Below are positions 10,405 to 58,400 of a stretch of DNA of 64,000 nucleotides, one piece after another. The translations under genes were made by a program, and so were the position numbers. This stretch comes from Ylistrum balloti (taxonomy: Eukaryota): the NCBI RefSeq assembly GCF_031769215.1, contig NW_026782025.1:124001-188000 (forward strand), in the 5' to 3' direction. How positions within the stretch are numbered: position 1 is the first letter of the stretch; every line of letters starts with the position of its first letter. Under the pieces are notes generated by a model. The model ran no database searches and had not been told where the DNA came from. It saw nothing but the letters and a program-made list of their open reading frames with translations.

Positions 10405-13400
10405 GATGATCAGATACCTACAGATGATTTACTTATAGCTGGATTTCATGAACCTTTTCGACTTGATAGGAATTTTGCTGGTGGAGGTGTTTTGGTCTAC
10501 ATAAACGATCTTCTAAAAGTAAACCGCTTACCGGAGTTAGAATTTCCTGGGGATGAGGTAATTTGGATTAAAATCACACTAACCAATTCGTCTTTCATCA
10601 TAGGTACAGCATATAGTCCAGAAAATTCTGTGTTACCCTTTTGGGACAATGTGCGTACATCTATTAGTAATGCTTTAGACACAACACCAAATATAATAGT
10701 AACTGGTGATTTAAATGTCGACTTATTAACTGCATCTCCTAACCATTATCTTTTCGAAATTATAACTTATTTTAGTATGATTAATGTCATAAACGAACCA
10801 ACTCGTACTGGACCAACTCGATCCAGCCTTCTGGATCCCATTCTCTTAACTCTTCTAATCTCTAAAGTCTATTTCTTGTGTTGATTCTTCTATCATACCA
10901 GTTGATAAATCCTTCAGTGATCATGATAGCTGTACTGCTTGCATTAATCTTCCATGTGCTTTTAGATCTATTTATAAGCGTAAAATCTGGATGTATAAAA
11001 GGGCTGATTTCCGAACGTTTAATAATCTTATTTCTAATTATAATTGGAATGATCTTTTCCTTAATTGTAACACAATTGATATTGCTTGTGAACGTTTTAC
11101 TAATATTTTTTTAGATTTTGCGAATTCATGCATTCCATCTAAAGTGGTCACTATTAGACCTAATGATAAACCTTGGATGACCTCTGAATTAAGGAAAAAT
11201 TTGAGAATTCGTGATAGGTTACATAAAATCGCGAGGTCAACCAAGCGCCTTTCGGATGTTAATAAATTTAAGTCTCAACGAAATAAGGTTAACAACATGA
11301 AAAACCACGCCCGTTTATTATTTTATGAGAATGTTCATGGTATAATTGAAGAATTTGTGTCGTCTGATCCAAAATCTTATTGGAGACTTATTAAAAGGTT
11401 AATGAATTCAACTGGAACTTCACAATCTATTCCTTCTCTTGTAGATCCTCATACTAATAATGTTGTTACTAATGATGAAGACAAAGCTAACTTATTAAAT
11501 TAATATTTTTGTAATATTACACAAGTCGATGATAGAAACACTGCAGTTCCTGTAGTTGAGTCTAAAACCAATAAAACGTTTAGTTCTGTAAGAGTAAATA
11601 GAAATGAAATCCGTGATGTTTTACAGATATTGAAGCTCGGAAAGGCCTCGGGTGAGGATGGAATAAGTCATCATATGTTAAGAAATACATCACAAACTGT
11701 TTGTATTCCACTTGAAATTATTTTTAACATGTCCTTATCGTCAGGCATATTTCCAGCCAATTGGAAAGTAGCAAAAGTTATGCCACTGTTTAAAAAAGGT
11801 GACAGGCATTCTCCCTCTAACTATAGACCGATTTCTCTTCTATCTACTGTTGGAAAAGTCTTTAAGCGTGTTATTTTCAAACATCTACATAATTATTTCG
11901 TTGAAAATTCATTGTTTTATAAACATCAGTCTGGCTTTATGCATGCGCATTCTACTGTATATCAGCTCATTGAAATTGATCACAATATTTGTATTGCTAT
12001 TGAAGAGAAAAAACACGTATGTATGGTTTTCTGTGATATTTCTAAAGCATTCGATCGTGTTTGGCATAACGGTTTGATGGTAAAACTAAAATCGTACGGA
12101 CTTTGTGGTGAGCTATTTACGTGGCTAGAAAACTATGTATTTAATAGGCAGCAGAAAGTTTTCCTAGTGTTTGTTCTCAATTAGGTTCAAACTCAGCAGG
12201 GTTCCTCAAGGTTCCATTCTTGGACCACTTTTGTTTCTTATATACATAAATGATATTGCCGATGTGCTTGAATCATCTGCTCGCCTTTTTGCAGACGACA
12301 CTTCTTTATTAAAGTCTTCCTCATCATGTCTTGAAATCCAAACTGTCTTAAATAGGGATCTTGATTCTTTAAACTTTTGGGCTAAAACTTGGTTGGTTAC
12401 TTTCAATCTAGATAAAACTGAGGTAATATTTGTTTCTTATTCGATTGACATAGATGATGATTTAGACCTGAAGTTAGATGGGAAAGATTTGAATTTTACT
12501 GATCATCATAGGCATTTGGGGGTAAATTTTAACTCTAGCGCAAAATGGGGGGGATCATATCAATGCTACATATATGTCTGTTATGAAGAAAATCAATGTT
12601 TTAAGAAGGTTGAAATATTTGTTAAATAGAAATAGTCTCCTAAAAATTTACAAAGCTTTTATTTTACCAATTTTAGAGTATGCGTGTGAATTGTGGGACG
12701 GTTGCACTAATACTGAATCAGATAAATTAGAGAAAGCCCAAAGAGAAGCTGCTCGTATTATAACTGGCCTTCCTTCTTATGCATGTATAGAAAATTTACA
12801 TTTTGAAACTGGTTTAGATACACTTTCGAATCGTCGAAAACGAAGAAAACTTCAACTTTTATTTAAAATGCATAACAAGCTAACTCCAGATTATTTAAAC
12901 GATATCTTGCCACCTATTGTTGCAGATAATAACCGATACAATCTTAGAAATAACAATGATTATAGAGTTCCTCTATTTGGGCTTTCTCTTACAAACCTCT
13001 CTTTTATACCTTCTATAATTCGTAGCTGGAATTTGTTAGATTTCTAACATTTGTACGGTCACTGCCTTCCATAAATTTGTTTAAAACCTCACTTACTTTA
13101 AATACACAACAATCCCCACCTATTTTAGTTATGGTGAACGGAAGTTAAACATAATACATACTAAACTTAGACACAGTTGTAGTTCCCTTAAATACGATCT
13201 TTATCGAGTAAATCTTGCTGAAAATCCAGTGTGCTCCTGTGGACATCCTTGTGAGAATGCCTTTCACTTCTTCTTCGAGTGTCAAACTTTCAGAAATGAA
13301 AGACACATTTTGTTTCAAAATCTGGCTGAGTTAGAAGTAGATTTGAATTTAGAGCTTCTTTTATTTGGTAATAACGATCTTTCTGAGGACCTAAACTATT

Positions 13401-38093: not shown

Positions 38094-41000
38094 TTATAAC
38101 AGAACACAGAACCTGGTAGATTGAATGGTTGGTGAGTGATCTGGCTTGGCAGCTTTTATATCATTTGCTTGCTTATTTTTCTCTACAGCATGAGAAATAG
38201 CGGCGGAAAATTTCGTCATATCGCCCTCCCATACTGAAGATGACAACTGTGAGATCTCGCGCACGGCAAGAACCTGAAAAAAGTGGTTAAAAAGACGTTA
38301 AAAACGGTTAGCAAAAAATATGACAATAAAAAACAAGATCTAAACAATAATTTTTTTATACAGAGATGGACCTGGAAATAATTTTTTAGTCTCTCTCTCT
38401 CTCTCTCTCCCTCTCTCTCTCTCCCTGTCTCTCTCTTTCTCTCTCTCTCTCCTTTACATGAGGATAACTTTCCGTTACCTGTTCTGGCGACCATGTGCTG
38501 TTGACCCTATTCTCGTCTTCCATGAACCTCGCAACACTAGCAGATAGCACTGTCGCTGAAATACAAGATGCCACTTTCAATGCCGTTTCTTCGTCGAATC
38601 CCGTTACCGCCCCCTTATGTGACGGTGATACTTTATGTTTAATTGGCAACACATGTTTACGTCTTTTCTTTCTCGATGCCAACTTGGTCTGATGTAGTGA
38701 CGTTGTTACTACCGTCTCCTGTGTAACTGGATCAGTCTTGTTAGGACTTTTCTTAGTTTCTGTGTTTTTGTTTTCAATATCCCAGCTCACTTTACAAGTC
38801 TGAAATTAAGACAAGTACCTATCTGAAGTTCATAATGGTAAATATTTACATGCATAGACTAGAAACTTGAAGATAAAACAAGGCTTATTTTTTTTAATTG
38901 ACAGAAACCGGAAGTCCATATTTGCAACCAGACTTGTAATCGAGGTTGACGTTCGACGTATTGTATGCAGTAAACAACCCCCTATATATACCCCTATGTA
39001 TAATGTATTTATTTGCAATGTGATGAGAATTGGCAGGGACGAATTACAAACAATATAGAAGTGATATCATGTACAGGTAACCTTTTCAAGCACAGTTTAT
39101 AAACAATATTAGAAAATACAGATTAATTTTTAGAAAAGTTTTTTACGAGTTTAGTTTCTGGGGTATTTGCACAAGTATGCATTCAAAGCTGATAAAAGAA
39201 CGAACGAAGAACGAATAAATCTACGTGAAGACTTACACAGGCAAAAACGGGTTGGTTAGTAGTATTTGGTTATTTTCAATGTTTTTGGAGTTGACGAACA
39301 TGAAGATGTATAAACGTAGTCTTAAACCCGTAATTATTGTATTGATACACAATGGAAACGTTTTAGAAGTTCTGGGAAATATAGATTCTTTATAGACTAA
39401 TACACATAAAAAATATTTTTGCGATAATCGACAGAATATTGCCGAATTATGGAAAGATATCATACAGAGGTTTCACCATATCATGTTCCTTCCTTGATGT
39501 TAGAGGTAAAAGTAAACCCTGAAGGAATGTTATAAACACCCAAAATGACTTCGAAAACTGAAACCTTGAAAACGTGGCTTGCAATATATATTCATGTCAT
39601 CCAAACTTATGTCAAACTAGGGTGCTACAAAATTCCTGAGCAGAGCTAACCTCTCACCTATCTTAAGTTTGTACCATAGACAACTTTTTTATCTTCATGT
39701 TTCAGATATACATCATTAGAAAAATACTCTTCATCGATTTCAATTATTTATCAAGTGATATCCCGATTTCGTTTTGCTAAACCTGTAATGTCAATTGACG
39801 AAGCAGCAAATGAGGGAAAGATATGTTGAACCTTCCTTAATAACAAACAAGTGGAGGGTGTACTCTTTTTGAGGGGGTTGTAACATTATTCTTTGTTTTG
39901 CTTTTGTTTTGTTTAAGTTTGGTTAAATTTGGGATTTTCTTTCTAAGTTTTGCAATATAATGTCCCTGAGTCAATGAAACAATTAAAATATCAAATGTCC
40001 TGTATTTTCTTTTCTTTTTCAATTTCTTTCGCATTTAATAAAATCTGTTAATCGATATACAACAAATTCGAACTCTTCAAATCCTTTCTCGTGTGTCTTA
40101 TTGTACAAAACAAATTACATACATGGCAACTCGATTTGATAACTGGAAACTTTTATCAATTTTTAAAATTTGCACGCAGTGTTCTTCTAGTAGACACATG
40201 ATGGAACGTACCTTCTTTGTGGTTTTTCGAGGAATGTTCTCAGTTGATATAGTACCTGGTCGTGTATTAGAATCGGGCGGATACAGCAATTCCGGCGACA
40301 GTGTTTGGAGCACATCATTCCGGTTCGCCATAAGAAACGCAAGCCATGTCTCGAATGACGTCACAGAGTTGTCCACTAAAATATATTAAAGAAAGCGAAG
40401 AAGACATTTACCTCAAGTCATTCACCAGTAACCAAAATTTAAAATTCGGCAACGTTTTTAAAATTCCAGCCCGAAAACAAAACACATAAACAAAACCAAT
40501 AAAAACAACATATTTTTGTATTAATCAATTACATGACAAGGAACCATGCCTCTAACGCCTATATGTGTATGCTTAGTGCTGCCGCTGTATATGCATCTTC
40601 ACTACTTCGTCAAATAAAAGAACCATTGCAGACACTGCAATGGATTTAGCACATTTTTCTTTCACGAATCACAAAACCAATATCAATTAAAATTGTTTAA
40701 ACTGTGTAAATGCAGAATGATTGATTATGAAATTAGTTTTTGTCTTTTCATTAAAACATATACACATATCGTACAAAAGAAAATATATCAATTGATAAAT
40801 ACTTATTAAAACATTATTAAAAAACGCCACATCGTTTCCTTGTATTTTGACCCCATGTCAGTTATAACTTCCGTTCCAATCGAGTCACTGAATAGACGAC
40901 AGTGCCGGTTTTAATCATCTGTTAATTTTTTCCATTTCTATATGTACTAGCATAGAAAGAAATAAAAACAAACTAACAATCGACTTGAACTAATATACAT

Positions 41001-44000
41001 TCTGTTAAATGTTGAGTTTTAGTATATATATATTAATGATAAATATAGAATTCTATAAAGTATACGTTAAAACCTGAAACATAAGATTTTATAAATTTGA
41101 TAAATCAAGTATATGTCAGAAGTCCATATGGTATATATCCTATGATTATTGAATGCAGTACATTTACTTTTAAGAATGTGTCCAAACATGAATTGCGAGT
41201 TCTAATTTATGAGTTATTTTGTTTTAACTGTGATAAATTATATATCGACCAAAAAAATAACGAACTCAGAATAAGTCTGTTCATTAGTTAATTATATAAT
41301 ATATTGTACTAGTTATATCCATGATTGTGCTGGTGACATATTTAATTTCATATGGTTATATATCAGTAAAGATTAGCTGATAAAAAATCTTCAACAAAGA
41401 CTCAACAGGCTAGATGAAAATTGTGCATGTTCTGTTTCTAGTATCACATGTCACATCAATTATGACGTAATCAAATGGTTGTTTAAAAATAAACACGATG
41501 AGTCTATTGAAGGATGTAAACCGCTAGTTCAAGACGGTTGTTAATGTGTCCTTATTTCTACATTTCCCTACTTACCATGGATCTGTAACATATATTCCTT
41601 TACTACTATATATGGATCGTTACCTTTGAATGGGATGAGCCATTTGGACGACATGGACTCGGTTTGTGATAGCTGTTTTGATACTAGCTGGTCAATCTTA
41701 AGACGACGGTCTGTAACGGATTTTCTAAATACCTCATCGAAATTCGGGTCTCCCCTGAAACTCAGGTACTTCTAAAAATAACAATAAACGATGCAAAATA
41801 ACGATAAGAAGTTAGAGTGTTCGAATCTCGATGTTATACATGGTATTTGTCACTCATTTGAGAACAGGGCATTATCTGGATTAAACTAATTTACATAACA
41901 GAAGACAAATTATATATAAGATGCATTGATCTTATTTTCAAAATGTTGTCAAATGTATCCTTGTAAAACTTTCCTTTGCTAACATTCTGACCTCGTTTAG
42001 TCAATTTTCAATAACGATTTTCTTCAAATGTCGTAATTTTAACTTATTGTTACATATTTCGTACTGAACTCTCTTACATATATGTGAATCTGGAATATCT
42101 GTGTCTTTCCTAACACATGCTCATAGAAATACCCATTTAAAGTATACTTTGAGCATACTTTACCTCTGTAACTAGTCCTGGCAACGAGGCTAAAAAATTC
42201 AGCAGATGGACAAGACATGGTGCCACGGTCATCCACAGAACCTGTGTGGCAGTCTTCAAGTCGGAGTAGGAATCCGTCACTACGCGAGCTATGAATTGCA
42301 GTTCCTTCGTAAATCCTTTCACGTTAATCCTTACCTATTTCAACAATAGATAAAACATGGAATTTCCTGTTAAATCTGAAAGAAGATCCTATATTCAAGA
42401 TAAAAATTATAATGACGGAGATTAAGATAACGAATATAGGCAACTAAAATTTGATAACATAGAAGGACCAGGTATAAAACCCAATTACTTCTTGTGGTAG
42501 GTTCCACTATATCGAGAGTAAATACCTTGATTGGAAGAAACTAAATAAAAATAAGCGAAAGAGAAAAGTTACAATGCTTAACTGGTTTACTACCGGTACA
42601 AATAGGTAATTTCATCCTCTTTAATCTTCTTGAATATTCTTATTTTGGTGTGTTGCATTTCTCTCACTTGTTACAAACTTTTGCGCTCTACCGAAATTTA
42701 AATCTAAATTGGAAATTGGAAGACATTAAGATATTTCTTATTTTTTTTCTGGATTACATTAAACTAAAACAAATGAAAATAAACCAGCATTAACACCAAT
42801 AATACAAATGTAATTGCAACAGATTAAAAAACAGATATATTTTGAAATTTGAAAAATGAAAAATAATGGATATTCAACCAGGAGTTGAAATTTTTTGATT
42901 TCTTCAAGACAAACTCGCAATTCATATTAGACTTGGCATAATACTGCTATCCAATAAGTACCACTGTACATTTCATATCCGTTTAGAAACCGATTTTAGG
43001 ATATTGTGCAAAACACACTCAAGCAAATAACACCTTTCAATTGGACTTAGTCAGTGATGCTAAGGGCCTAAATTTTGAACCTAGAGGGGACCTGAGGAAA
43101 AAACAAATTTGATCGAAAGGCATGTCAAAATCTAGATGAAAAAGTGAACTAGCCTCATAATTGAATATATTTCTTACTTTTCCTATATGTGGTATTTTCT
43201 ATTGACTATCTGAAGAGAGTGAAGAAATTTCAAACCATTACCTCCTTTCCGAGCTGTATGAGGACACCTTGTTGCCAGACATAGCTGTATTGTGTGAATG
43301 GTCTGGTCAAATTTAAGCACAAAGCTAGTATCCTAAGTACTATACCCAATGGTATGGCACATTTACAGCAGAAGTGGACCGAGATCTGGAAGTCTCCCTT
43401 GTGTGGGTTCTCTGACCAATGCAAGCTCTAAGGACATCATAAAGTGTCGCAAAACACATTGAATAGTGACCAGATTATGAAATTACATGGAAGTTTTATC
43501 ACAAAAACAATCGTATCTGTGAATCTACCAAACGCTTATTAAATTGCACTGCTCATAAAAATTAATCACTACTATACAAATGATGCCGTGATCTGTCATT
43601 GCAGATTGTTGTTTTTGAACATGATTTATTTGCAAAATAATAAAAAAAGAGTTTACGCCTAAAGATAAAAAATCTATTTACGTAACACTATGCAATTGTA
43701 AATATTTACGAAATACGCATTTAAAGAAAACATTAATTTCTGACTGGATGCATTTACATACCATAAAACATTATTTATAATACTGAAGACTTGATTTACC
43801 GGTTTAGTCTCCGGGAGTTTGTTCATAAGCATGATTTGTCGCATGCTTGTACCGGACAGATAAGTAAAGAACGGCATGTCCAGCTCTGGGGTCGGGTCAA
43901 TGGCCTGTCCTTGGGTGTTCGCGTGGCAGATTAGTCCAAGACTCTCCATCACACCCAATGCCAGTGTTATCTGGTCCATACGGATGTACGGCGTCTAGAA

Positions 44001-44224
44001 ACAGAATTTTAACAATGTGCTAATGTTTCATGCAATTTTATCAGTTTTTTTCTATAGAAACATATATGATTACAAAAAAAGAGAACATATTCTAGTTGAT
44101 TAATTTATATTTAATTCTCATAATTACCATACAAATGCTGAGAATCAATTCGTAAATTGATCTATGCGGCTAGGTAGAGAACTATAATGTATTAAAATAT
44201 ATAGGTATACATAAGATGATTTTG

Positions 44225-44264
<40 letters not shown>

Positions 44265-47200
44265 CCGTTTGGTAAATGATCAATTAAAAACAACCTACAT
44301 TCCATAGCAGAGGTAGAAAAGATTCAGGAACCATTCCGCTGGTCTGGAGATTTTCAAGCACTCCTGCAACGACGGTCGGATTCGGCGGTGTCCGGTTCAT
44401 GTTTGAAGGCCAGAACTTACCAGCCTCCAAGCGAAACACATGCCCTCCAGCGTCGAGATGGGACCGCAACATGAGGTTAGAAAAGGCAAGAGGGTCGACA
44501 CAAAAAACTGTGGTCGCCTCATCTTGCGTCGTGATGTGGAACTCTCGAACATAGTCCTAGCAAGTTAAGAAGATTTAATCAGGTATATTCGTACGGTTTG
44601 ATCGTAGGATCAATATCTATTTTAGGATCATATTTAAACAGATTGTCTCTGTTACACTCTGCTAGTGAATTATAATTCTTTTTCAATCCACGAATCAAAA
44701 GAAAACCATGTTCTAAAAATAGAAAGAAAGAAAAATAAATAAAATACCAGCATTTTGTTTTAACATTTTCAAAGACCTATCTTCAAGCAAAAAACCCTTT
44801 CAGTAATTTGTAGTTGGTATCATGAAAACGTAATACAATCGATATATGCAGTGATTTGTAGCTAAATCAAATCATTCTATAATGATGCGAAACGGTTACC
44901 TTCTTCAGCAGATAGTTCAAAGCTTGTTCAGTAAAGTTGCAATAAGAGTATGGTAATTGTTCTTTTGTCACAAAAATAAGATGTTCCTTGTTCTTTTTGT
45001 GGATATACTGAAAAGTCTGTAGGAGACGTGGTTTGATAGATAAGTCGTAACCAACGTCGGAACAGATCCAAGAGGCACATGCGAGGAGTGACTTTCTCAA
45101 CTGCTGGAGCATCTGGTAAGATATCACATTACTTTTTGTTTACATAAATGCGAAAAATGTTGACAGCTGTGATACCAGGCCAACCTAAATGTACATATAG
45201 TACGGAAAGTACCTTTTCAGGTTTATATGGTATTCTAAGTAAATCAGACTTGAATATTCAGAAATGAAAGATGCATAATGATAAGGAGACCATTAGTATC
45301 GGTTAATGAATTAGTTATGAATGAAATATATATACTTTTATATTTTACAGCAGTAAAATGTCGTCTATCACTCTGATCACTGAAAGTACAACGTCTAGAT
45401 CTGTGCCAAACATTTAGACTCGGCAACATAAAAATCGTTAAGCTTAGCTTTGTATTTAGCAACGCTGACGGTTTGCTTGGTTTCGTGCTTAGCAACACAA
45501 ACGTTTTGCTAAAGAGAAGAGGAAACGTAACATCATTCAAAAGATAAATGATAACATCTCGTGAAATATCAAGATCCCAATAAATATTTTAACACACCAT
45601 TTTAGTATAAGACAGTAGATATACACTGACGTCATCAACGTTTTACAACAGTATCGTTAATATCAATGAGCCTATTACATCCTACATGCATAAAAAAACT
45701 TACACCAGTGAAAATTTTTGTTATTTCTTATTTATGCAGAGTAAATAAAATTACAACACTATCAAAAAGATACTTTCAGGAAATTATACACCTGAAGTTG
45801 TCTGATAGCCACCAAAACGTCACATATAACAATTTATAATTTTTATTTAAGTATTTCAAGGCATGTTTGTTTTACTCACAACCATCAAAAATACATATAC
45901 TCAATTTATTTCATTTACCCAAATATCACTAAGAAAATTGGTTACATTTAGGTTGTTAAATATTATCTATAGAAGTGTAATGGAAGGGGTTCAAGTAAAC
46001 AACTACAGCAGAAAAAGAGTAAAAGAAAACAAGTACCTGAGTGTCAGTAGAGTTAAAAGGATGAACAAGTAACGAAAAGTTATTTTCTGTTATAGCTGGT
46101 TGCTTTGCTTCATCACCAGTTACTTCTTCACTTGAGGCTAATCTGTAAGATGGAGAACATGAAATGTTACTAAGGAGGGGATGGGTAGCATGATACCATA
46201 ATATAACTTCGGGTAGCAGTACATTGTATCAAGGTAACGGATTTGTCCCCTTGATGATATAAATGACATGTCATGTATCAATCATGTTGTGTCAAGCTAT
46301 CCTCAGACATGATTTTTTTTGTAGACAAGATTGTAGATATAAGCATGTTTTCCTCTATATTATAAATTTATATTCAACATGGTTTCTTCTTCTTCTTCTC
46401 CATCTACGTATCTCATAAAAATATTACTACAGGGTTTTCTCATCCTCATTATTATATACTTATGGCATTGAGTTGCACTTTTTATCCCACTGACATGATC
46501 AAAACCTGATCAGCGACATTACGTAGTAGTATTATACATTATTAACATATTACGAGAAGTGCAGGGTAATCCTCTGGTGTGCATACTCCTGGCTTAGCGC
46601 TATATCTCTACGTATCTTTTGACAGGTAAAACTGCCATGACAGTTCTTTCTGATAAACTATTTGAAGAAATATTTTCTTAGTAGTACCACAAAGTTATAC
46701 TTCTATGTCTGCTGGTAAAAATTCAGTAGCCTATTGCAAGGTCTGTTTTCTTGGTAGCAATCAAAGTATAACAGTGCGTGACAGTAATTCACTAACCTAT
46801 CACAGAACGTGTTCTCCTGAAAGTGATTAACTGACATATCTAAAAAGAAAAAAAGCATAGTCTTCTGACATCAATTCGCTAAACGATTATAGGACGTGTT
46901 TTCCTGAAAGTAATTTACTTTCCAATACGGGACGAATTCTTCTTGACAGTAATTCCACTTACAAATCGCAAAACATGTTCTGCTGGTAGCATTTCGCTGA
47001 CATTATACCAGACGCGTTCTCCTGTCAGTAATCCAATTACAAATGGCAGAACGTGATCTGCTGGTAGCATTTCTATGACTTTAAACAGGATGTGTTCTCC
47101 TGACAGTAATCCACTTATAAATGGCAGAACGTGATCTGCTGGTAGCATTTCTATGACTTTAAACAGGATGTGTTCTCCTGACAGTAATCCACTTATAAAT

Positions 47201-50200
47201 GGCAGAACGTGATCTGCTGGTAGCATTTCTATGACTTTAAACAGGATGTGTTCTCCTGACAGTAATCCACTTATAAATGGCAGAACGTGATCTGCTGGTA
47301 GCATTTCTATGACTTTAAACAGGATGTGTTCTCCTGACAGTAATCCACTTATAAATGGCAGAACGTGATCTGCTGGTAGCATTTCTATGACTTTAAACAG
47401 GATGTGTTCTCCTGACAGTAATCCACTTATAAATCGTAGAACGTGATTTGTTAGCAGCTTTTCCACGAACTTATACAGGACCGGTAACCTATAACAGAAC
47501 ATTTTCGTTTTGCAGTAATTTACCAACCTTTTACAGAACGTGCTTACCTGAAAGTAATGAACCAAGCTATCACCGAGCATGTTCTCCTGAAAATGATTAT
47601 TTAACCTAATATTTAACCTGCCTTTTTGGTCCCCTGACGGCATTTCACTTATACATCACGGGGCATTTATTACAGTACTCGATCTCCTGGCGTTAGTTCA
47701 CAGGGGGTGTACTTATGGGAGAAATTCACCAACCTACAAGTTCCCCTGGTAGTAATTTTATCACAGGACTTGTCTTCAGAGTAGTAATTCACTTACCTAT
47801 CACAGGATGTGTTTTCCTGGGAGTACTGGCCGACAACCTCGTTCCATCTATCCTTTATACGACGACAAATGTCACCGATGTTAATTTTTTGACACGAAGG
47901 TAAGTTAGTTTTGGTTAGTATTGCAATGATGTGTGGTTTGTGAATCTGAAAAAATAAGAATATTCAATATCAACAAAGAAATATTGATATCATTCTAAAT
48001 CAACTATTGAAAAACAACCTCTCAATGTTATGTAATTCTATGTCAACTAATCAATATTGTTATAATTTTGTATCAATCAATCAATATTATTATAATTCCA
48101 TACCAGTCAAACAATATCACTATAAGTTCATATCAACTAATCAATACTATATAATTTCAGGTCGACCAATCACTACTGCTGTCAGCATGCTTTAAATGGC
48201 CTTATTCAACATGTTTTCATTGAAGTTACTAGTGTTTTAGAAGCCTAAAAAAAGTATGTAAAATGTGGTTGGAAATTTATATCTGATGTGCAATAGTTCT
48301 AATTTTTCTAACTTAAAATGGGTTACACAGCCACCCTAACACTAACATACCGAGCAAGAAAATAGTTAAAGCATCTGAAATAAATAATATATTATCACTA
48401 AAAGAAGTGTCATAAATTATCAAATGTATTGTTAACGATACAAAAAGTAGCAGAAAATATATGACAGACCCATTAACAAATGAAAATCTAAGGGACACCG
48501 ACTTTGGGGGAAAAGCAAGGAAAAAAGACACAACAGATAATGAACAGAAAAAGTTTGATGTTTTACGATCAGGAGATGCGAAGTTTTGCTAGAGGTCATA
48601 TTAGATCGTCATGCTAATTTAAGTGTGATTTTTCCAAGACAGCTTCACTTACCTTATACATTATATACCTGCAGATGTCTAAGACTTCCACATCAGGATC
48701 CTGCGTGTCGGCTGTTACCAGAACGAGGTAGATTGCGGGTTCTGTCAGTAAGACGGGGTAGAGTGCTCGCAATAACTAAAGGAATAATGTAAAAAGAAGA
48801 CGTGTGTAAATCATAACTATGGAAATATATATAAAAAAAATCACCAATTGACTTAATGAAGCTCTTAAGGTTGACCTACCTGTCAAGATTTCTAATTTGA
48901 AATAATTGAAATCAGGCTATGATTTTACATCTTTTGAGAAAAGAAATGATAGGACATGAATTTAGACTCACCCGCCATACCGTAGGACTGAATAAGCTCT
49001 ACCACCAAAGAGAGATTACAGAATTGACTAATATTCATGCAAAACGCATTCCACCGAAATAATTTTACATCGATTATTATATAATTCTTGAAGAAGTATG
49101 CCAAACGATCGATTGAAACATAGCTCACTAAAACCATGGTGAGTTCCATGCAGGTATTGATTGTAATTGGTCAAAAGATCATTTACAATGCTTTAACTGC
49201 TCAATAAGCAGGAAGCAAAGGTCGTCCAGAAATTCAAATTTAAATTTTTGAAAAATATTTGCTATACTTTATTGTGAAGCAGTTTGTCTTTGTGTTTAAT
49301 ACAGTAGGTTATCAAATGTATTAACCATGTTAGTATTTAAATCTTAAAAATATAACTTATTTCATGCATTAAAGCACAATTAAATGTCGTCGATGGTAGC
49401 TACTCTGGTACAATACAGAAAAGAATGAGTCTGTGAAAAGGGTACAATATAACACGATAAACAATTATATTTTCTTCTGTTTTGTTAATTGTAACCGATT
49501 TCATGATGTGACCTGAAAGTGGTTTCGTCTTGAAATAGAAGAACTGGATCAATAGGTCATCAGCTATATATAGTTAAGTCATTAATGCCATTAGTGATTG
49601 TTCTGTTTTAATTGGTATTACATCGATGTTTCCACCATGACACGCCACAGGGAGTCGTGCAATGCTGTGAAATAGACACATGAAATGATTAGATCAACCC
49701 ATTCCTTACAGGACTGGTTATCAATGCGACGACCTTATTAGACTTAAAAAATAAACACTGACATATTGGACAGGTCCGTACATACTTTACTACCTGGAAG
49801 TTCCCACATGTCCATGTGAAGCTCTGCACCCAATCTCTCCTCTGTAAACAAAACACGACACGTTCAATATCACATATTTGCTTATCTGCTCACATAACGT
49901 TTGAGAAAAGCTAAATCTAGGTTAAAATAGGATGTTAAACAACCGGTAGCAAACATACAATGTGCAAACCAGGCAGAGAGGCTGGGAAATCTTATACCAC
50001 AAGATGTCGACGCCCATGGGGGTATTGACATATCTTCGTTAATTAGTTTTTGTATCATCATAAGATCATATAGCATGTGGGCATCAGATTCTAACAAACC
50101 ACAGAGGTCAGACGACAAATACACAACAGATCCGTCTCACCTTTGGAGGTATCTGTGAAGAGTCGGCCTGTGTACACAGAAATGTCCCCACGATCTGATG

Positions 50201-53070
50201 GTGCATTCATTTGATCAAGGAGGAGGTTGATGACAGTGGTCTTGCCGTGCCCACGTCCTCCCATCACGTAAACACGAGTCCTGATAAAGTTAATCGAGAA
50301 CATATACACATTCTTCTGATAAATAAAGTCTTCAATAAAACTTTAAATTGCCTTTTCCAATTATTCATATCCTGCCTTATAAAATTGTTAATGAACTCAG
50401 CATTTAATGAGGATTTGGCTCAACATCCGGCATACCACATTTAACATTCAGAAATAGAATCAACACACCAAACTGGAATGTTTTGCAATTCGACATACGA
50501 CATTCAACACGTTGTATTTGAATGATGTACAAGTGAATATTCACATAGACGCCTATCCAAACAGATGAAATAATACTTAAAAGTATATTTTATTTAGATG
50601 GTAAATATTCTTCTCTTACCGTCTTCAACCATTCTAATCAGAACGAACTGAACGTCATGTTTCGATTGATTTATCAAAGAATGAATTTAATCATGATAAA
50701 GGATTTCTTTTAATTTAAAACGTCAAATTTTATTTTTTTTCCATTTAAAATATCTATATAGCATGCTGTTATGACATTAAATACATATAAGACTCGTATG
50801 TAAACGTGGTACAATAAAACTCGAAAATAAGACACGTTTTATTTTCTTTGTTAGTAACAAATACAGGCTGATCAAAGTAGGGAACTATATGTTTATTTTC
50901 ATTGTACGCTTATATTGACATCGGTCTTTCCGAGTACTTATGGAATTATATTACAGACAACAACAGCTTTTAGTTTGTAATTTCCATATAACAGACCCAT
51001 GTTATAATGAACTCGTTTTTTCAGACTTCAGTTATTTTGTTGTTGTATTATACCCTGTTTACATATGTAAATTTCATAAAATTGTTTTATATCATAAACA
51101 CTTGGTATTTGTTAACTTATATATTATCAATAAATCGTGGTAATTTGGTATAATCTGTACCTTTTGCAATCTTCTACTTCCATCATTACAGAGTAAGATG
51201 ACGAAAATCACTCCTGATATAACTCACATATCGTTGTAGTAACAGAGAGAACTAATAGAACACTTCCGTATACACTCACTGTTACAGTTATGTCAGAGAA
51301 GTATATGTGTTTTAACAACGGTGATTTAATAATAAACCGATAGTACACAGTGGAATATTTGATCTGTTCTTTTGTTCATACTTTGAGTGATCAAAAATAT
51401 CTTATTCAGTTGAACATTGCGTGGCATAGTAAACTTATAAAGTCAGTACCAAAGACAAGTGTCGTAAATTGCCTTAAAGGTAAGATCAACGCACACATCA
51501 AAGCGTCTACCTCAGATCCAAACGACCATTCATGATTTCAGACATTGTCATTATCAAATGATCTGAACACATCTTTGTTAGTTAAATTGCGTACATATTC
51601 TGTTCTTTGGCAGTGTGATCCCCGCATAGTAATAACAAACCCCGTGTTAACACTACTCCTACCAATACAAACGAATGGTTGCACTGACAATAACACTGTT
51701 CCTCGTAATTTGATACCATGGTTACGCTGACTGTCCCTCGTAATTTGATACCATGGTTACACTGACAATAACACTGTTCCTCGTAATTCGATACCATGGT
51801 TACACTGACAATAACACTGTTCCTCGTAATTTGATACCATGGTTACACTGACAATAACACTGTTCCTCGTAATTTGATACCATGGTTACACTGACAATAA
51901 CACTGTTCCTCGTAATTTGATACCATGGTTACACTGACAATAACACTGTTCCTCGTAATTTGATACCATGGTTACACTGACAATAACACTGTTCCTCGTA
52001 ATTTGATACCATGGTTACACTGACAATAACACTGTTCCTCGTAATTTGATACCATGGTTACACTGACAATAACACTGTTCCTCGTAATTTGATACCATGG
52101 TTACACTGACAATAACACTGTTCCTCGTAATTTGATACCATGGTTACACTGACAATAACACTGTTCCTCGTAATTTGATACCATGGTTACACTGACAATA
52201 ACACTGTCCCTCGTAATTTGATATCATGGTTAAATGGACTATAACGAGGTTATATCAACAATAAATATGCTTATCGTAGGTATTTTCCGTGATGCCATTG
52301 TGAAAAACATTGTTCCATGGTTACACTGACAAAAACATTGTTCCATGGTTACACTGACAAAAACATTGTTCCATGGTTATTCAGTGACAAAGTCACTGTG
52401 TCGTGGTAACACTGACCAAATCATTTTGTGGTGGTAACATTGCCAAAATCACTGTGCCGTGGTAACATTGCCAAAATCACTGTGCCGTGGTAACACTGAC
52501 AAAACACTTTTCCATGGTTTCAATCATTGTTTTCATCCATTGTTGTATACTGATTCCGGTAATTTGAAATGATGGTTACTCAGCTTCCTGCCAGGTCGAT
52601 GGCACCATACACTTGCAAACAATTGCCTTCAAATACAATGCAAACAGAACAGTCTGTTTCTTACCCTCCGGTCAAAACCGGTTTTAGTCTACTGATAGAT
52701 TTCTTAACTCAATTGATAATCCTGGAAACCTCTTACATGATTTGTGACCTATAACTCAACTTCGGCTCAGTTGACGACAGTAGCACCAAGCTACGTGCTT
52801 GTCTGTCAAGCCCAATATTCGAAAGGGGCATTGCACGAAACTGCGTATTGACGTGAATGCACCGGATTACACAGTGCTTCTGTCCAGTGCTAAGTGGCAC
52901 ATCACACCACTGTTAGACTGTAATATCCTCTTATCATTTATCAAATGATTACGCACCTGTCCCTTCACAATATCGACGCAATCGATTGGCAGATCACGGG
53001 CCCGGACAGACAATGTCTTTGACCACGTCACGCAATGACTAATTAAATCTCGGTGCACCTGTTCCATCAT
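38094..53070 (-). CDS. Roc-COR (Roco-type) P-loop protein with C-terminal CaaL motif, about 910 aa
   Basis: complement join(52957-53070,52749-52909,50141-50280,49786-49841,48653-48775,47797-47945,46037-46142,44900-45112,44299-44556,43800-43994,43242-43427,42164-42334,41576-41771,40212-40375,38479-38799,38094-38273) = 2733 nt, all GT-AG, phase-consistent, no internal stop. Roc-like: RVYVMGGRGHGKTTVINLL, MDMWELPG, LYPVLLTEPAIYLVLV, PHIIAILTKTN, MLQQLRKSLL. COR-like: TVFCVDPLAFSNLM, GMVPESFLPLLW, LGVMESLGLIC, IPLGIVLRILALC, YVWQQGVLI, LASLPGL. The first exon and true N-terminus are uncertain. Confidence 0.8.
38390..38452. repeat. Imperfect (CT)n microsatellite in the last intron of the Roco gene
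   Basis: Directly visible. Confidence 0.95.
44226..44264. repeat. Poly-T tract
   Basis: Directly visible, about 38 T. Confidence 0.9.
46720..47830. repeat. 39-bp minisatellite with homogenised 78-bp higher-order dimer (5 identical copies, 47047-47436)
   Basis: CAGAACGTGATCTGCTGG at 47047, 47125, 47203, 47281 and 47359. Each 78-mer is two diverged 39-mers; degenerate 39-mers flank both sides. Confidence 0.95.
48042..48175. repeat. Degenerate approximately 30-bp tandem repeat, 4-5 copies
   Basis: Reiterated TCAACTAATCAATATTGTTATAATTTTGTA-like units. Confidence 0.7.
51682..52232. repeat. 43-bp tandem repeat, about 12-13 copies
   Basis: Unit TTACACTGACAATAACACTGTTCCTCGTAATTTGATACCATGG; CCATGG spaced 43 bp apart (e.g. 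51794, 51837). Confidence 0.97.
52300..52520. repeat. 28-bp tandem repeat related to the 43-bp unit
   Basis: AAAAACATTGTTCCATGGTTACACTGAC repeats, followed by diverged GTGGTAACATTGCCAAAATCACTGTGCC copies. Confidence 0.85.
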
Positions 53071-54059
53071 AAGTGATTGGCGATTCCCGACACATATATG
53101 TACAGCTGTATGTAGACTGCATCAAGTGTGAGGAATGCTATTTCAAATAAACCTATACAAGTGTTCATGTACTCACCTGAAAGGTATTGGTGAATCCATG
53201 CACATATATTACATTTCAATAGTAATTGATATCAGCCTACCAACAGGAGTACAATTGAATAGACATTCCGTGAGATGTAAGAGATATTATTCTGGCCACT
53301 TGTATCATTGCTGATATAAGAACAATAATTAATTATTTAGATCATTCACCTCTACATATCTATAAAGCAAATGTTAATTAATTAAATCTGTAATTCCGAT
53401 GCATTCGCATTATCAGAATATCGCCTCTTCTCACCAAATATAACAATAATGACCTCGTCTGATTGGAAATCCCATTATCCTTTGCGCGTCAACATCCATA
53501 GGGTAGTAGGTTATTACACCCACATTAAATGAATTACATTATCACTAATTTCCTAACAAAATACAAAGTGTTTCTGGTCTACATATTCCATGTACAGTAT
53601 ACTAAATATCGATTTCATTTATTTTTTTCTATTTATCTACGTATCTTTTTATGCGTATGTATGTGTTGAGATCAATGTCTTTCTGGATGATTTGTTTATT
53701 ACGAAATAAGAAACTTGCAAACTGTAAATCTTTCTAACCGTAATCACTGGTTATATCTAAAAGGTAGATATAAATCAAGACTTTCATAGAACAACGGTGA
53801 ATGGATCATATGTATTTGTTCCATAAACCGTCCTCAATGTAACATGCCCATTTAAACTGAGACGCAGTCAGTGTGACGTTTTATATAGAGAAAACGTGTG
53901 AAATGTGCAAGATGTCGATTATTAGGACAGGATTATAATAATGGTAACAACCGACTTAACAACATAATTACACCTAGAATCTTTTGGACTTGAAGGGAAG
54001 TTGTGTCCATTGTCGGCCTTCGTTCTCTATATTTGTCATAACCTGTTTTGTCAGGTTTT

Positions 54060-55496: not shown

Positions 55497-58400
55497 TTAG
55501 TTACGACAAACTAGAACGGGACAACTGGCATGATGAATCACGTGATCGCTGACACTGCCGAGGAATGTTCGCCGGACTTTCCCGAGTCCTCGAGTCCCAG
55601 TTACTATGCAACCTGCTCCCACACGTTGTGCTACATCAACAATGACATGGCCTGGCTTCTGTGAGTATTCAACCTTAAACTCTGCCTGTATCTGTAATAG
55701 AAACCAATTGTATTTATCGCCGACGAACACCTCTGATATCACAATAGATTCAAAGCTTACTATGTATGCGCCATCTTGTGATTATCAAACTATGACTAGA
55801 CTGTAGACTTATGAAGGTATAAGATATTTGAATATAACGTTAAAATTATCAGTTTTGATATAAAATTATTTTTTATTTAATGATAGGCTCGATAATTAGT
55901 GTTCAACACAGTTTTCAATTTTTTGATATTACATATTTCAAAGGTATATCATTTTCTAGACAAAAAGTTAAGGATTATGATTTTTTCTGTCATTAAATGA
56001 ATAGAGCTTGACATTCATTGACCACTGTTTTATCACAAACGTATGCACAATAACTTTTCAGTAATGATTTGCCAACCCACAGTTAACGTGCGGCAAGACA
56101 TCTTGTAGCACAGGGTTAAAATCAAAATATCAATTGTTGTTTTATTGTCTTTGTAGACTAAACGTCAAATCAATCGACAACTTTAGTGTTTCTTCTGAAT
56201 GTCCTGTCATTTTGCATCCTGTTTTGAACGTCTGTTTGCATGATACGTCACATGACAGGTGCAGAGGCTGGCCGAGCAGTCGGAATGCTTAACGCAGGAT
56301 AATCACGACGAACTCTAGCTGCATTCTTCAGTGTCGATTGTGGCATCGATTGCAGATGACCGGAAACGTCACCGAGAGACCTTGATCGTTATTTGACCAT
56401 GTAAACATGAGACTGCTTTAGTGGCGGCCTATACACTTTTACTGATGAGCCCAGGTTTTGGTTGGACTTTCATGATGACAGGAGGCATGTTTGTCGTGGG
56501 TAGGGAGAGAGTTGTATGTGTGTTGATTGCTGTGTCACTGAGCATGACCGTTTTGTTGGGACCTCGGTAATGAATATGGTAACAAAGATCAGTTTTGAAA
56601 ATTGGCCTAACCTTTCACGTTACCTTCACCGGATCAAGCCTGCGCGGGACATGTAACATCAACTTATTACGCGGCATCCTGCCAACCGACAGGTGCTTGC
56701 TGATTGTCTTCGTCAAGAATGGTAACGAATTCCACAAATTGCCATACGGCGCCTGATTCGCAGCCGATGCTTAGCCGATGTCGTGCTTTTATTGGGGCCA
56801 GTGGAGGACATACTCACTATTGATATTGTGCTGAACTAAGTATTTTGGATTTTCAACGCCATTTGGATTTACTTATTTCAGAATGTTATGAGCTTTTTCT
56901 GTAATCGTACATGACACGCTTGAATGAAATTACTTCAAAGTGGATAATTTTTTTTTCTTGTTGTTTGACTTGCATTGCATATTCCAAAGGTATTTGTCTT
57001 TTGATACAAATAAATCTATATTTAAAAAGTGATTTCCTAAATGTGCCCAGTATATGATATGAAAAGTGGTCACGGAATTTAAAAGGCGCTTGAAACAAAC
57101 GTATATACGGGTATTAAAACTCGAAGGAAACATATGTATAGAAGAATTTAAGCTATTTAATTATTATGTGTTCCTTACAATTTATCGTAAGTTTGGTTAC
57201 ACATCGATGTTGAAAACATGACTTGGAATCGCCATAAAGAAACTTACCCCAGCGGCCGAGGCTTTGGCTAACCATTTGTCATGTAGAGCTTGGGTGTTTT
57301 CACTTACTTCTCTCTGTAGTTGCGTTACCCGACCAGGACCTGCAGTCAGTTATAGATGAATTACTAAAGCATTTCCGACTGTTTTGATGGGTAAGCCGTA
57401 CAATTCGTTATATCAAACAATACAGTCATCGGGTTAAATTAGGATAATAATCCAGTTGTTGGAAAATATTAAGAAATAAACTGTTACAATATATAAACCA
57501 CAATTACGAAATGTTATATATTATATTTTACATCGTAATTATATTCCATTCATTCGCTTGTATCTTTTGAACAATCTGTAGTCGGTATTTCACTGCTTAC
57601 AAGTAGGCTGTATATTTCATTCGTGCTTGGAAACAAGACCTTTCGTAACGGTCTAGACCTTAACTTGAAATAGATGAAATGAAAGCCAAAAATAGAATAC
57701 AATTTTGTTTTTACGTTTCATGAGACTGTTGAATATGTGTAAGAAAAAGCGAAGAACAAAAGGGGAGTATATTTGCTCTCGCAAACGACTTCCGTTATCA
57801 TTAAGCTACACCCGTTGAAGCCCTGTAACATTTTAACGCAGTGGTCGGCATTGGTTTCAGAAACTGTTTTGCATAAAAATCATTGTTTCATAACGAATCA
57901 GTAATATGATTAAATATCGTTAAAGGAATCAGAATACACTATCAGAGAACTTAATGATATGTATTTTGAAATCATCATCTTATCTTTTGCATTAGTAGAA
58001 ATCCAACACTGTTGGTTGGGCTGTTAAGGACAGATCGCGGGATTTAATTATATCTAATAATAACGTTGTTACAATATCAACGTCACATGTCAGCTTGTGA
58101 TGATTATTTGTCTGCAAACCTGTACCGGCCATAAATCGATGCTTATATTTACAAATTACTGACAATGAAACGCAAATGTAAATATGTCTTTTTATTTCCA
58201 TGCTTGACACCGTCAATCACACATAGCCTAGTCTGCTGATGTGGCTTTATATCGTAGGTGTAATAAGTAAATCTTTCAAACATATGATTCTTATATGTCC
58301 TAGTATTCGGAACTCCGGAATGGCTGGTATTCCAAGGGAGATTTCAATCATTAACAATTGAGTATTGTTAGGCTGTTTCATCTAATGCAGTTACAAAGGC

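Follow-up and report, generated by a model that had tools for sequence, protein, structure and literature searches.

A divergent stand-alone Roc-COR protein of scallops with a conserved C-terminal CaaL box, a putative prenylation signal

Roco proteins, among them MFHAS1/MASL1, LRRK1/2, DAPK1, TORNADO1, the Dictyostelium Rocos and the C. tepidum Roco, carry a Roc domain followed directly by COR-A and COR-B. LRRK2 reaches membranes indirectly, through prenylated Rab GTPases (PMC6337361), and a 2019 review of the Roco family mentions prenylation only for these Rab partners. In Aplysia, ROCO modules are fused to TIR and Death domains (PMC9334734). Outside the family, human GBP5 has CVLL as its CaaX box; it is a prenylated protein whose localization is sensitive to an inhibitor of geranylgeranyltransferase (GGTase), and green fluorescent protein (GFP) tagged with CVLL alone reaches the Golgi (PMC2998424). 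Motifs of this kind that end in Leu are better substrates for GGTase-I than for farnesyltransferase (PMC1847700). Here we analyze the gene LOC132546528 in a 64,000-nucleotide stretch of the Ylistrum balloti genome (assembly GCF_031769215.1, contig NW_026782025.1, positions 124,001 to 188,000; the window, whose own numbering is used below). It encodes a protein of 810 residues that appears to be a minimal, very divergent Roc-COR protein ending in CVLL. A first-pass annotation, made from the letters of the window, had read the locus as a stand-alone Roc-COR protein with a C-terminal prenylation motif.

The Roco proteins named above give the best matches for residues ≈5–645, with the LRRK2 Roc domain as the nearest solved sequence relative of the scallop Roc. 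Unlike them, the scallop protein has no leucine-rich repeat (LRR), ankyrin, kinase, death or other accessory domain, has only 8 residues before Roc, is missed by the Pfam COR models, reads ExxG at G3 and TKxN/D at G4, and ends in CaaL. With the mollusc Roc-COR expansions it shares the phylum and the Roc-COR core, and some of their clusters also look stand-alone; in contrast to these expansions, it has no Death, CARD or TIR domain and possesses its own helical tail and CaaL end. In the ESM Atlas, mollusc Roc-COR clusters (≈500–1170 aa) include some with only Roc and COR-A and others with Death, CARD, HEPN or AAA, and bacterial stand-alone Roc-COR proteins of 600–730 aa are common. Since both groups share it, the stand-alone Roc-COR layout is not remarkable by itself, and is less unusual than the first-pass annotation had it. 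Neither the Roco review nor our text searches report a Roco protein that ends in CaaX, in line with that annotation, and no lipid-anchored Roco came up in a full-text search, although the collection was incomplete and this is absence of evidence. What is apparently unreported is the combination of a CaaL end and a conserved helical tail on a minimal, very divergent Roc-COR protein.

Two further groups of proteins invite comparison at the C-terminus. Rho/Ras-type CaaL GTPases likewise combine a Ras-like G domain with a C-terminal geranylgeranylation box, and one of them, Cdc42, likewise has CVLL as its last residues; CVLL also appears with Cdc42 in papers on the geranylgeranylation of that protein. 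Their CaaX box lies ≈10–20 residues past the G domain, often with a polybasic stretch, whereas ≈590 residues separate the two elements in the scallop protein, with no conserved polybasic stretch. The prenylated large GTPases GBP1/2/5 resemble it by analogy rather than homology: behind a dimerizing G domain they have a C-terminal region that is helical and then a CaaX box, identical in the case of GBP5. They belong to the dynamin-like rather than the Roc-COR family, and the score of 0.43 between the scallop tail and GBP_C is meaningless.

The window consists of AT-rich eukaryotic DNA with short exons. Spliced mapping of the 810-residue protein, named by NCBI "uncharacterized protein LOC132546528 [Ylistrum balloti]" with no Pfam domain annotated, placed it on 15 coding exons on the minus strand, from 51183 to 38094, with identical translation, GT-AG introns throughout, an ATG at 51183 and a TAA at 38094–38096. 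When exon 7 (71 aa) was searched by HMMER against 1.84 billion representative proteins, the one credible match was the LOC132546528 protein, at 100% identity; four other matches were repeat proteins, read as spurious. The ortholog locus of Pecten maximus (L001) was compared with the Ylistrum gene exon by exon and also has 15 exons, with identical phases and identical lengths in 13 of the 15, exons 14 and 15 being the ones that differ. Over the whole coding sequence (CDS), the ratio of nonsynonymous to synonymous divergence (dN/dS) between Ylistrum and Pecten is 0.157, at dS ≈1.1. Because of the exact mapping, the shared exon structure and this low ratio, we take LOC132546528 to be a real gene that is under purifying selection over its whole length.

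The coding exons are as follows.

51161–51183, minus strand: exon 1, 23 nt, MEVEDCK plus two bases of R8; mapped exactly, with ME.E..KR kept in Pecten and Argopecten.
50141–50280, minus strand: exon 2, Roc strand 1, P-loop GGRGHGKTT (G1), helix 1 and switch I region; aligned to the LRRK2 Roc P-loop.
49786–49841, minus strand: exon 3, G3/switch II, DMWELPGSK (ExxG for DxxG); WELPG unchanged in all three orthologs covering the region.
48653–48775, minus strand: exon 4, Roc helix 2, strand 4 and helix 3 (LLRALYPVLLTEPAIYLVLVTAD...); aligned to LRRK2 Roc past switch II.
47797–47945, minus strand: exon 5, Roc strand 5, G4-like ILTKTNL (TKxN; TKTD in Argopecten) and helix 4; from the spliced mapping.
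46037–46142, minus strand: exon 6, poorly conserved loop within Roc, strand 6 and G5-like FNSTD; from mapping and predicted secondary structure.
44900–45112, minus strand: exon 7, final Roc helix and start of COR-A; from the spliced mapping.
44299–44556, minus strand: exon 8, COR-A (DYVREF...VFCVDPLAFSNLM...); from mapping, 258 nt in Pecten as well.
43800–43994, minus strand: exon 9, end of COR-A; from mapping and structure comparison.
43242–43427, minus strand: exon 10, start of COR-B (HFCCKCAIPLGIVLRILALCL...VWQQGVLIQLGKE), where conservation within the protein is highest; from the ortholog alignment, COR-B dN/dS 0.105.
42164–42334, minus strand: exon 11, COR-B strands and a long helix; from mapping and predicted secondary structure.
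41624–41771, minus strand: exon 12, COR-B; from the spliced mapping.
40212–40375, minus strand: exon 13, end of COR-B and start of the linker; Roco structural alignments stop at ≈610–650.
38479–38799, minus strand: exon 14, variable K/T/S-rich tail (residues 646–709), then the first conserved helix (FDEETALKVASCISATVLSASVARFMEDEN); from mapping, with no resemblance to a known family.
38094–38273, minus strand: exon 15, conserved helices (VLAVREISQLSSSVWEGDM...), linker KPDHSPTIQSTRF, CVLL and TAA at 38094–38096; from mapping and the ortholog alignment.

The multi-exon gene of the first-pass annotation is thus in place on the minus strand, with a P-loop (GGRGHGKTT), the quoted segments SRKKRRKH, EETALKVASCISATVLSASVARFM and VLAVREISQLSSSVW, and STRFCVLL followed by TAA; the sixteen exons, the start and the tail length given by that annotation were not borne out. 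Exon 8 reads across a strong internal GT at 44421. Hand-built joins that used this donor, a donor at 49794 and small exons at 49664 and 48998 were dropped in favor of the annotated protein and the Pecten exon structure.

Within the protein, Roc comprises residues ≈8–217, COR-A ≈218–421 and COR-B ≈422–645. The best Pfam family was Roc, with 18.5 bits and an E-value of 0.0024 against a gathering cut-off of 27 bits (E = 5e-4 in the best ortholog), and Pfam reported no further domain beyond this sub-threshold match. When a profile of the four known orthologs was run against PDB sequences, the top 16 matches were all LRRK2 Roc, with a best E-value of 6e-4 and an alignment that spans the P-loop and switch II and extends up to strand 4. 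The P-loop exon alone returned only generic ABC/IF2 P-loop matches from the PDB, and 19 single stop-free segments run against Pfam gave only generic P-loop matches and the USP domain of the neighboring gene. Predicted secondary structure is compatible with a Ras-like fold, with strand 1 at residues 9–15, the P-loop, five helices and five more strands, the last of which comes after a loop of low conservation (≈159–186). Behind Roc, COR-A is predicted to be helical and COR-B mixed.

Canonical G3 and G4 motifs read DxxG and NKxD (THxD in LRRK2), and the Asp of G4 normally reads the guanine base. In the scallop proteins, G1 is intact (GGRG[HY]GKT) and kept among the orthologs. G3 is WELPG, with Glu for the usual Asp, in all orthologs covering the region, and G4 (residues 125–128) reads TKTN in Ylistrum and TKAN in Pecten, but TKTD in Argopecten. 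These atypical motifs are compatible with nucleotide binding, which is likely. With Glu in G3 and, in two species, Asn in G4, it is uncertain whether GTP cycling is normal, and base specificity is in question since two of the three species compared have Asn for the guanine-reading Asp.

The region behind Roc is not recognized by curated profiles. The Pfam COR-A and COR-B models (PF16095 and PF25497) gave no match at E-values up to 10 in any of the four orthologs, and no COR match was obtained when the four-ortholog profile was searched against PDB sequences. Yet structure and language-model comparisons place residues 196–645 in COR-A/COR-B, in agreement with the Roc-COR identity proposed in the first-pass annotation. 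For the whole protein, the clusters nearest in ESM Atlas language-model features were all Roc/COR-A/COR-B, with a score of 0.95 and 201 of 256 features in common. The Atlas model of the protein has a predicted template modeling score (pTM) of 0.59, and its structure search returned MFHAS1-like and other Roco clusters as the best matches, with a template modeling (TM) score of ≈0.57 over ≈540 residues. To exclude the possibility that Roc was the sole driver of these matches, residues 196–645 were queried separately. By features, COR-A/COR-B clusters, many of them molluscan, came out on top (0.95, 0.94 and 0.93), and by structure the fragment matched MFHAS1-like and other Roco models with TM scores, normalized by query, of 0.66–0.67.

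AlphaFold (AF2) was run with the four-sequence alignment on the whole protein and on residues 1–650. Searched by Foldseek against the PDB, the AF2 model matched LRRK2, LRRK1 and the C. tepidum Roc-COR and LRR-Roc-COR structures at ranks 1–23, with E-values of 1.7e-7 to 1e-4 over ≈600–650 columns; the isolated COR domain 3dpt was also matched. Against the Swiss-Prot models, ranks 1–16 were all Roco proteins (TORNADO1, MFHAS1, LRRK1/2, DAPK1, GbpC, Roco10 and Roc-COR-CHAT), with E-values of 2.7e-11 to 4.5e-5, and query residues ≈5–640 aligned with the Roc-COR part of each of them.

Several features of this evidence weigh against the assignment. The Roc score stays below the Pfam cut-off, and the COR profiles fail entirely; the Atlas comparisons set one predicted model against another; and both AF2 models are poor, with mean values of the predicted local distance difference test (pLDDT) of 35 and 37, so that their global geometry is unreliable. 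The Foldseek TM scores from these models were only 0.1–0.2, and the matches are carried by local structure and sequence states; because of the low pLDDT, we gave the AF2-based TM scores no weight. Since the PDB profile, the language-model features, the structure search with the ESM model and Foldseek on the AF2 models all agree, we are highly confident, on sequence and model comparisons, that the LOC132546528 protein is a member of the Roc-COR (Roco) family, the failure of the curated COR profiles notwithstanding.

As residues up to ≈610–650 align with Roco COR-B, the tail beyond COR is ≈165 residues long (≈646–810), shorter than the ≈290 unrecognized residues first described. Its first part, 646–709, is K/T/S-rich, poorly conserved (33–45% identity) and probably disordered. 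The basic cluster SRKKRRKH noted there at first is present in Ylistrum and absent from the orthologs. Residues 710–786, in contrast, are conserved (63–75%) and predicted to be helical, and the protein ends in KPDHSPTIQSTRFCVLL, where a flexible Pro/Ser/Thr linker precedes the CaaL box. Compared with the ESM Atlas, the tail (646–810) reached a feature score of 0.57 and a TM score of 0.42 at most, and thus resembled no known family. The tail helices are only moderately amphipathic, and the tail contains no transmembrane-like stretch; the most hydrophobic window of the protein lies inside COR-B.

The last four residues are CVLL in Ylistrum, CAIL in Pecten, CVVL in Mizuhopecten and CTIL in Argopecten. 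The Cys at position −4 (Cys807 in Ylistrum, codon at 38106–38108) and the final Leu are thus invariant in four of four scallop genera, in line with the first-pass expectation that orthologs keep the terminal cysteine. The middle residues vary (V/A/V/T and L/I/V/I) and are small or aliphatic. Because the Cys and Leu are fixed while the residues between them vary, the C-terminus fits the CaaX rule. In Ylistrum and Pecten, checked at the DNA level, the stop directly follows the box, and in all four genera a conserved HSPxIxST[RK]F precedes it. In the final 24 codons, the proportion of synonymous differences between Ylistrum and Pecten (pS) is 0.875, which is saturated, and that of nonsynonymous differences (pN) is 0.15.

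Our interpretation, which we hold with moderate confidence, is that the protein is a minimal divergent Roco, geranylgeranylated at Cys807, that acts as a membrane-tethered, nucleotide-controlled switch dimerizing through COR; beyond the motif, we infer the prenylation, the membrane location, the dimerization, the use of nucleotide and the biological role. GGTase-I would add a C20 lipid to Cys807, and cleavage of aaX and methylation would come next, as usual. The long flexible tail would then tether the Roc-COR module to a membrane, either the plasma membrane or an endomembrane, where it could act as a switch or scaffold like other Rocos, dimerizing via COR-B under nucleotide control, while the conserved helical tail would probably bind partners or regulate the protein itself. 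There is no conserved polybasic stretch near the box, and the four-ortholog alignment shows no conserved second Cys there; should the protein be lipidated, our guess is that it goes to endomembranes rather than the plasma membrane. The first-pass reading of a stand-alone Roc-COR protein with a CaaX motif is supported, in that it was refuted by none of the three points on which it might have failed, namely the match to COR, the domains of the annotated models and the terminal cysteine of the orthologs, while membrane anchoring is predicted from the motif.

Other observations pull the opposite way. The CaaL box has neither a polybasic stretch nor another lipidation site next to it, the basic cluster lying ≈110 residues upstream and not being conserved; the G3 and G4 substitutions make normal GTP cycling uncertain; the first and last exons are known from genome sequence and annotation; and it is the motif that speaks for prenylation. 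The leading alternative is that the Roc-COR GTPase is cytosolic and keeps its C-terminal peptide for a reason other than lipidation, as a docking motif or as a hydrophobic end that packs on the tail helices. The conservation of the entire HSPxIxST[RK]FCxxL, beyond the Cys and Leu, would suit this explanation, as would the lack of an adjoining conserved polybasic or palmitoylatable element and the helix that the AF2 model shows, at low confidence, for residues 799–809. Nevertheless, a fixed Cys and Leu with small or aliphatic residues varying between them is the pattern of the CaaX rule, CVLL alone is a functional geranylgeranylation signal (PMC2998424), and the stop stands immediately after the box in both species in which the DNA was read. 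We therefore regard a non-lipid role of the C-terminus as improbable and prefer geranylgeranylation at Cys807.

Since mollusc Roco expansions are fused to Death, CARD and TIR domains, the protein may, by analogy, have a role in immune signaling. A more specific and speculative proposal, which we think unlikely, is that the lipid-anchored scallop Roco works like the prenylated GBPs, dimerizing on a membrane and signaling through its private tail, perhaps in cell-autonomous immunity and possibly with a nucleotide other than GTP; the last point is raised by the TKxN that replaces NKxD at G4.

A less probable alternative is that the gene model is incomplete and that upstream exons, or a different 3' end, add further domains. 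The first-pass annotation had placed the first exon in the open reading frame (ORF) that starts at 53070 (MMEQVHRDL...), within the following element.

52843–53088, minus strand: conserved upstream element holding the ORF from the ATG at 53070 to the donor at 52957; 82–85% nucleotide identity to Pecten L001 8068–8313.

This element of ≈250 bp has its Pecten counterpart 1.7–1.9 kb 5' of the Pecten ATG, and its identity far exceeds the neutral expectation at the dS given above. It holds an open frame of 37–38 codons that ends at a GT donor conserved in both species, ≈1.8 kb upstream, and this frame, together with the visible incompleteness of two of the four ortholog models, is what would favor additional N-terminal exons. 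However, the only good donor of the ORF, at 52957, is in phase 0, and the exon 2 acceptor at 50280 requires two preceding bases, so that the ORF is excluded from the CDS. Read manually through the likely acceptor before the ATG exon, the frame would stop a single codon later in Ylistrum, and in Pecten it would be out of frame with the main ATG. By a manual count, 11 of 37 aligned residues differ between the two species, most changes being amino-acid-altering, and the conservation extends beyond the donor, which is typical of non-coding constraint. With the phase mismatch, this pattern ruled out the 53070 ORF as a coding exon, and the element is probably, to judge by its sequence, a 5' untranslated exon, a promoter or an upstream ORF. 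The start is instead MEVEDCKR at 51183, in the exon 51183–51161, and the ortholog alignment shows this MExE..KR start to be kept in Pecten and Argopecten.

Nor does the neighboring upstream gene, which lies on the same strand, supply a domain. Its last exon, at 55781–55500, encodes the C-terminal part of a universal stress protein (Usp) domain (Pfam E = 6.5e-16) and ends in a stop 4.3 kb upstream of the Roc-COR ATG; by its sequence, it belongs to a separate neighbor. A tblastn search of the 10 kb that precede the gene in Pecten found no counterpart of this exon. At the other end, Pecten shares the last exon and the position of the stop. The annotated Ylistrum and Pecten models add no LRR, ankyrin, kinase or death exons, in line with the first-pass reading, and we consider an incomplete model quite unlikely.

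The weakest alternative, that another P-loop GTPase is fused to an unrelated alpha/beta region and that the Roco matches are artifacts of weak models, could appeal to the missing COR and sub-threshold Roc profiles, the AF2-based TM scores and the lack of sequence relatives beyond Pectinidae, but it is very improbable given that four different methods rank Roco families first, with the COR part alone included, while non-Roco GTPases come only lower down in the remote searches and cover the G domain only.

Relatives were sought in a collection of 5.8 billion proteins, searched by word index with the full protein, the ortholog profile and a COR-only profile at E-values up to 10. The searches returned only the four pectinid proteins, those of Pecten maximus (829 aa, matching at 68%), Mizuhopecten yessoensis, Argopecten irradians and Ylistrum itself. 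Neither these searches nor the HMMER search of exon 7 found a sequence relative outside Pectinidae, and other mollusc Roc-COR proteins showed no sequence-level link, with E-values above 0.1 in all searches; at the sequence level, then, the family is confined to scallops. The Mizuhopecten model (657 aa) is without Roc and that of Argopecten (588 aa) without COR-A, gaps that likely stem from missed short exons. As these models omit such parts, automatic annotation does split the gene in some genomes, which partly confirms the first-pass suspicion; in Ylistrum and Pecten maximus it is whole. Between the latter two, dN/dS is 0.135 in Roc, 0.205 in COR-A, 0.105 in COR-B, 0.245 in the variable tail and 0.17 in the helical tail.

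If our interpretation is true, a Roc-COR protein that has its own lipid anchor and lacks kinase and repeat domains would offer a natural, minimal system for the effects of membrane tethering on dimerization and nucleotide cycling. The practical reach is limited, as the family is scallop-only by sequence. The COR assignment was made through remote homology. More broadly, the large mollusc Roco repertoire includes members too divergent for standard domain annotation.

Several repeats lie in and around the gene. Between the upstream element and the ATG exon, a 43-bp satellite occupies 51675–52232 in 13 copies. A related array (≈73% identity) is found at Pecten L001 8868–9495, and because it sits at the same relative position, the location of the array is conserved across genera. 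In intron 5, a 78-bp satellite of 6.4 copies (95% matches) at 46944–47447 keeps a false ORF of 242 codons open, and nearby, at ≈46800–46900, the 3' end of exon 5 (CAGGAAAACACATCCTGT...) recurs in partial copies. A (TC)31 microsatellite at 38390–38451, in intron 14 just past the exon 14 donor, gives rise to a false ...ERERERE... ORF tail. Elsewhere in the window, on the plus strand at 11630–12626, two overlapping ORFs in different frames encode the two halves of a reverse transcriptase domain (RVT_1, E = 1.7e-17 and 4e-9), part of a retroelement copy that is frameshifted and probably dead.

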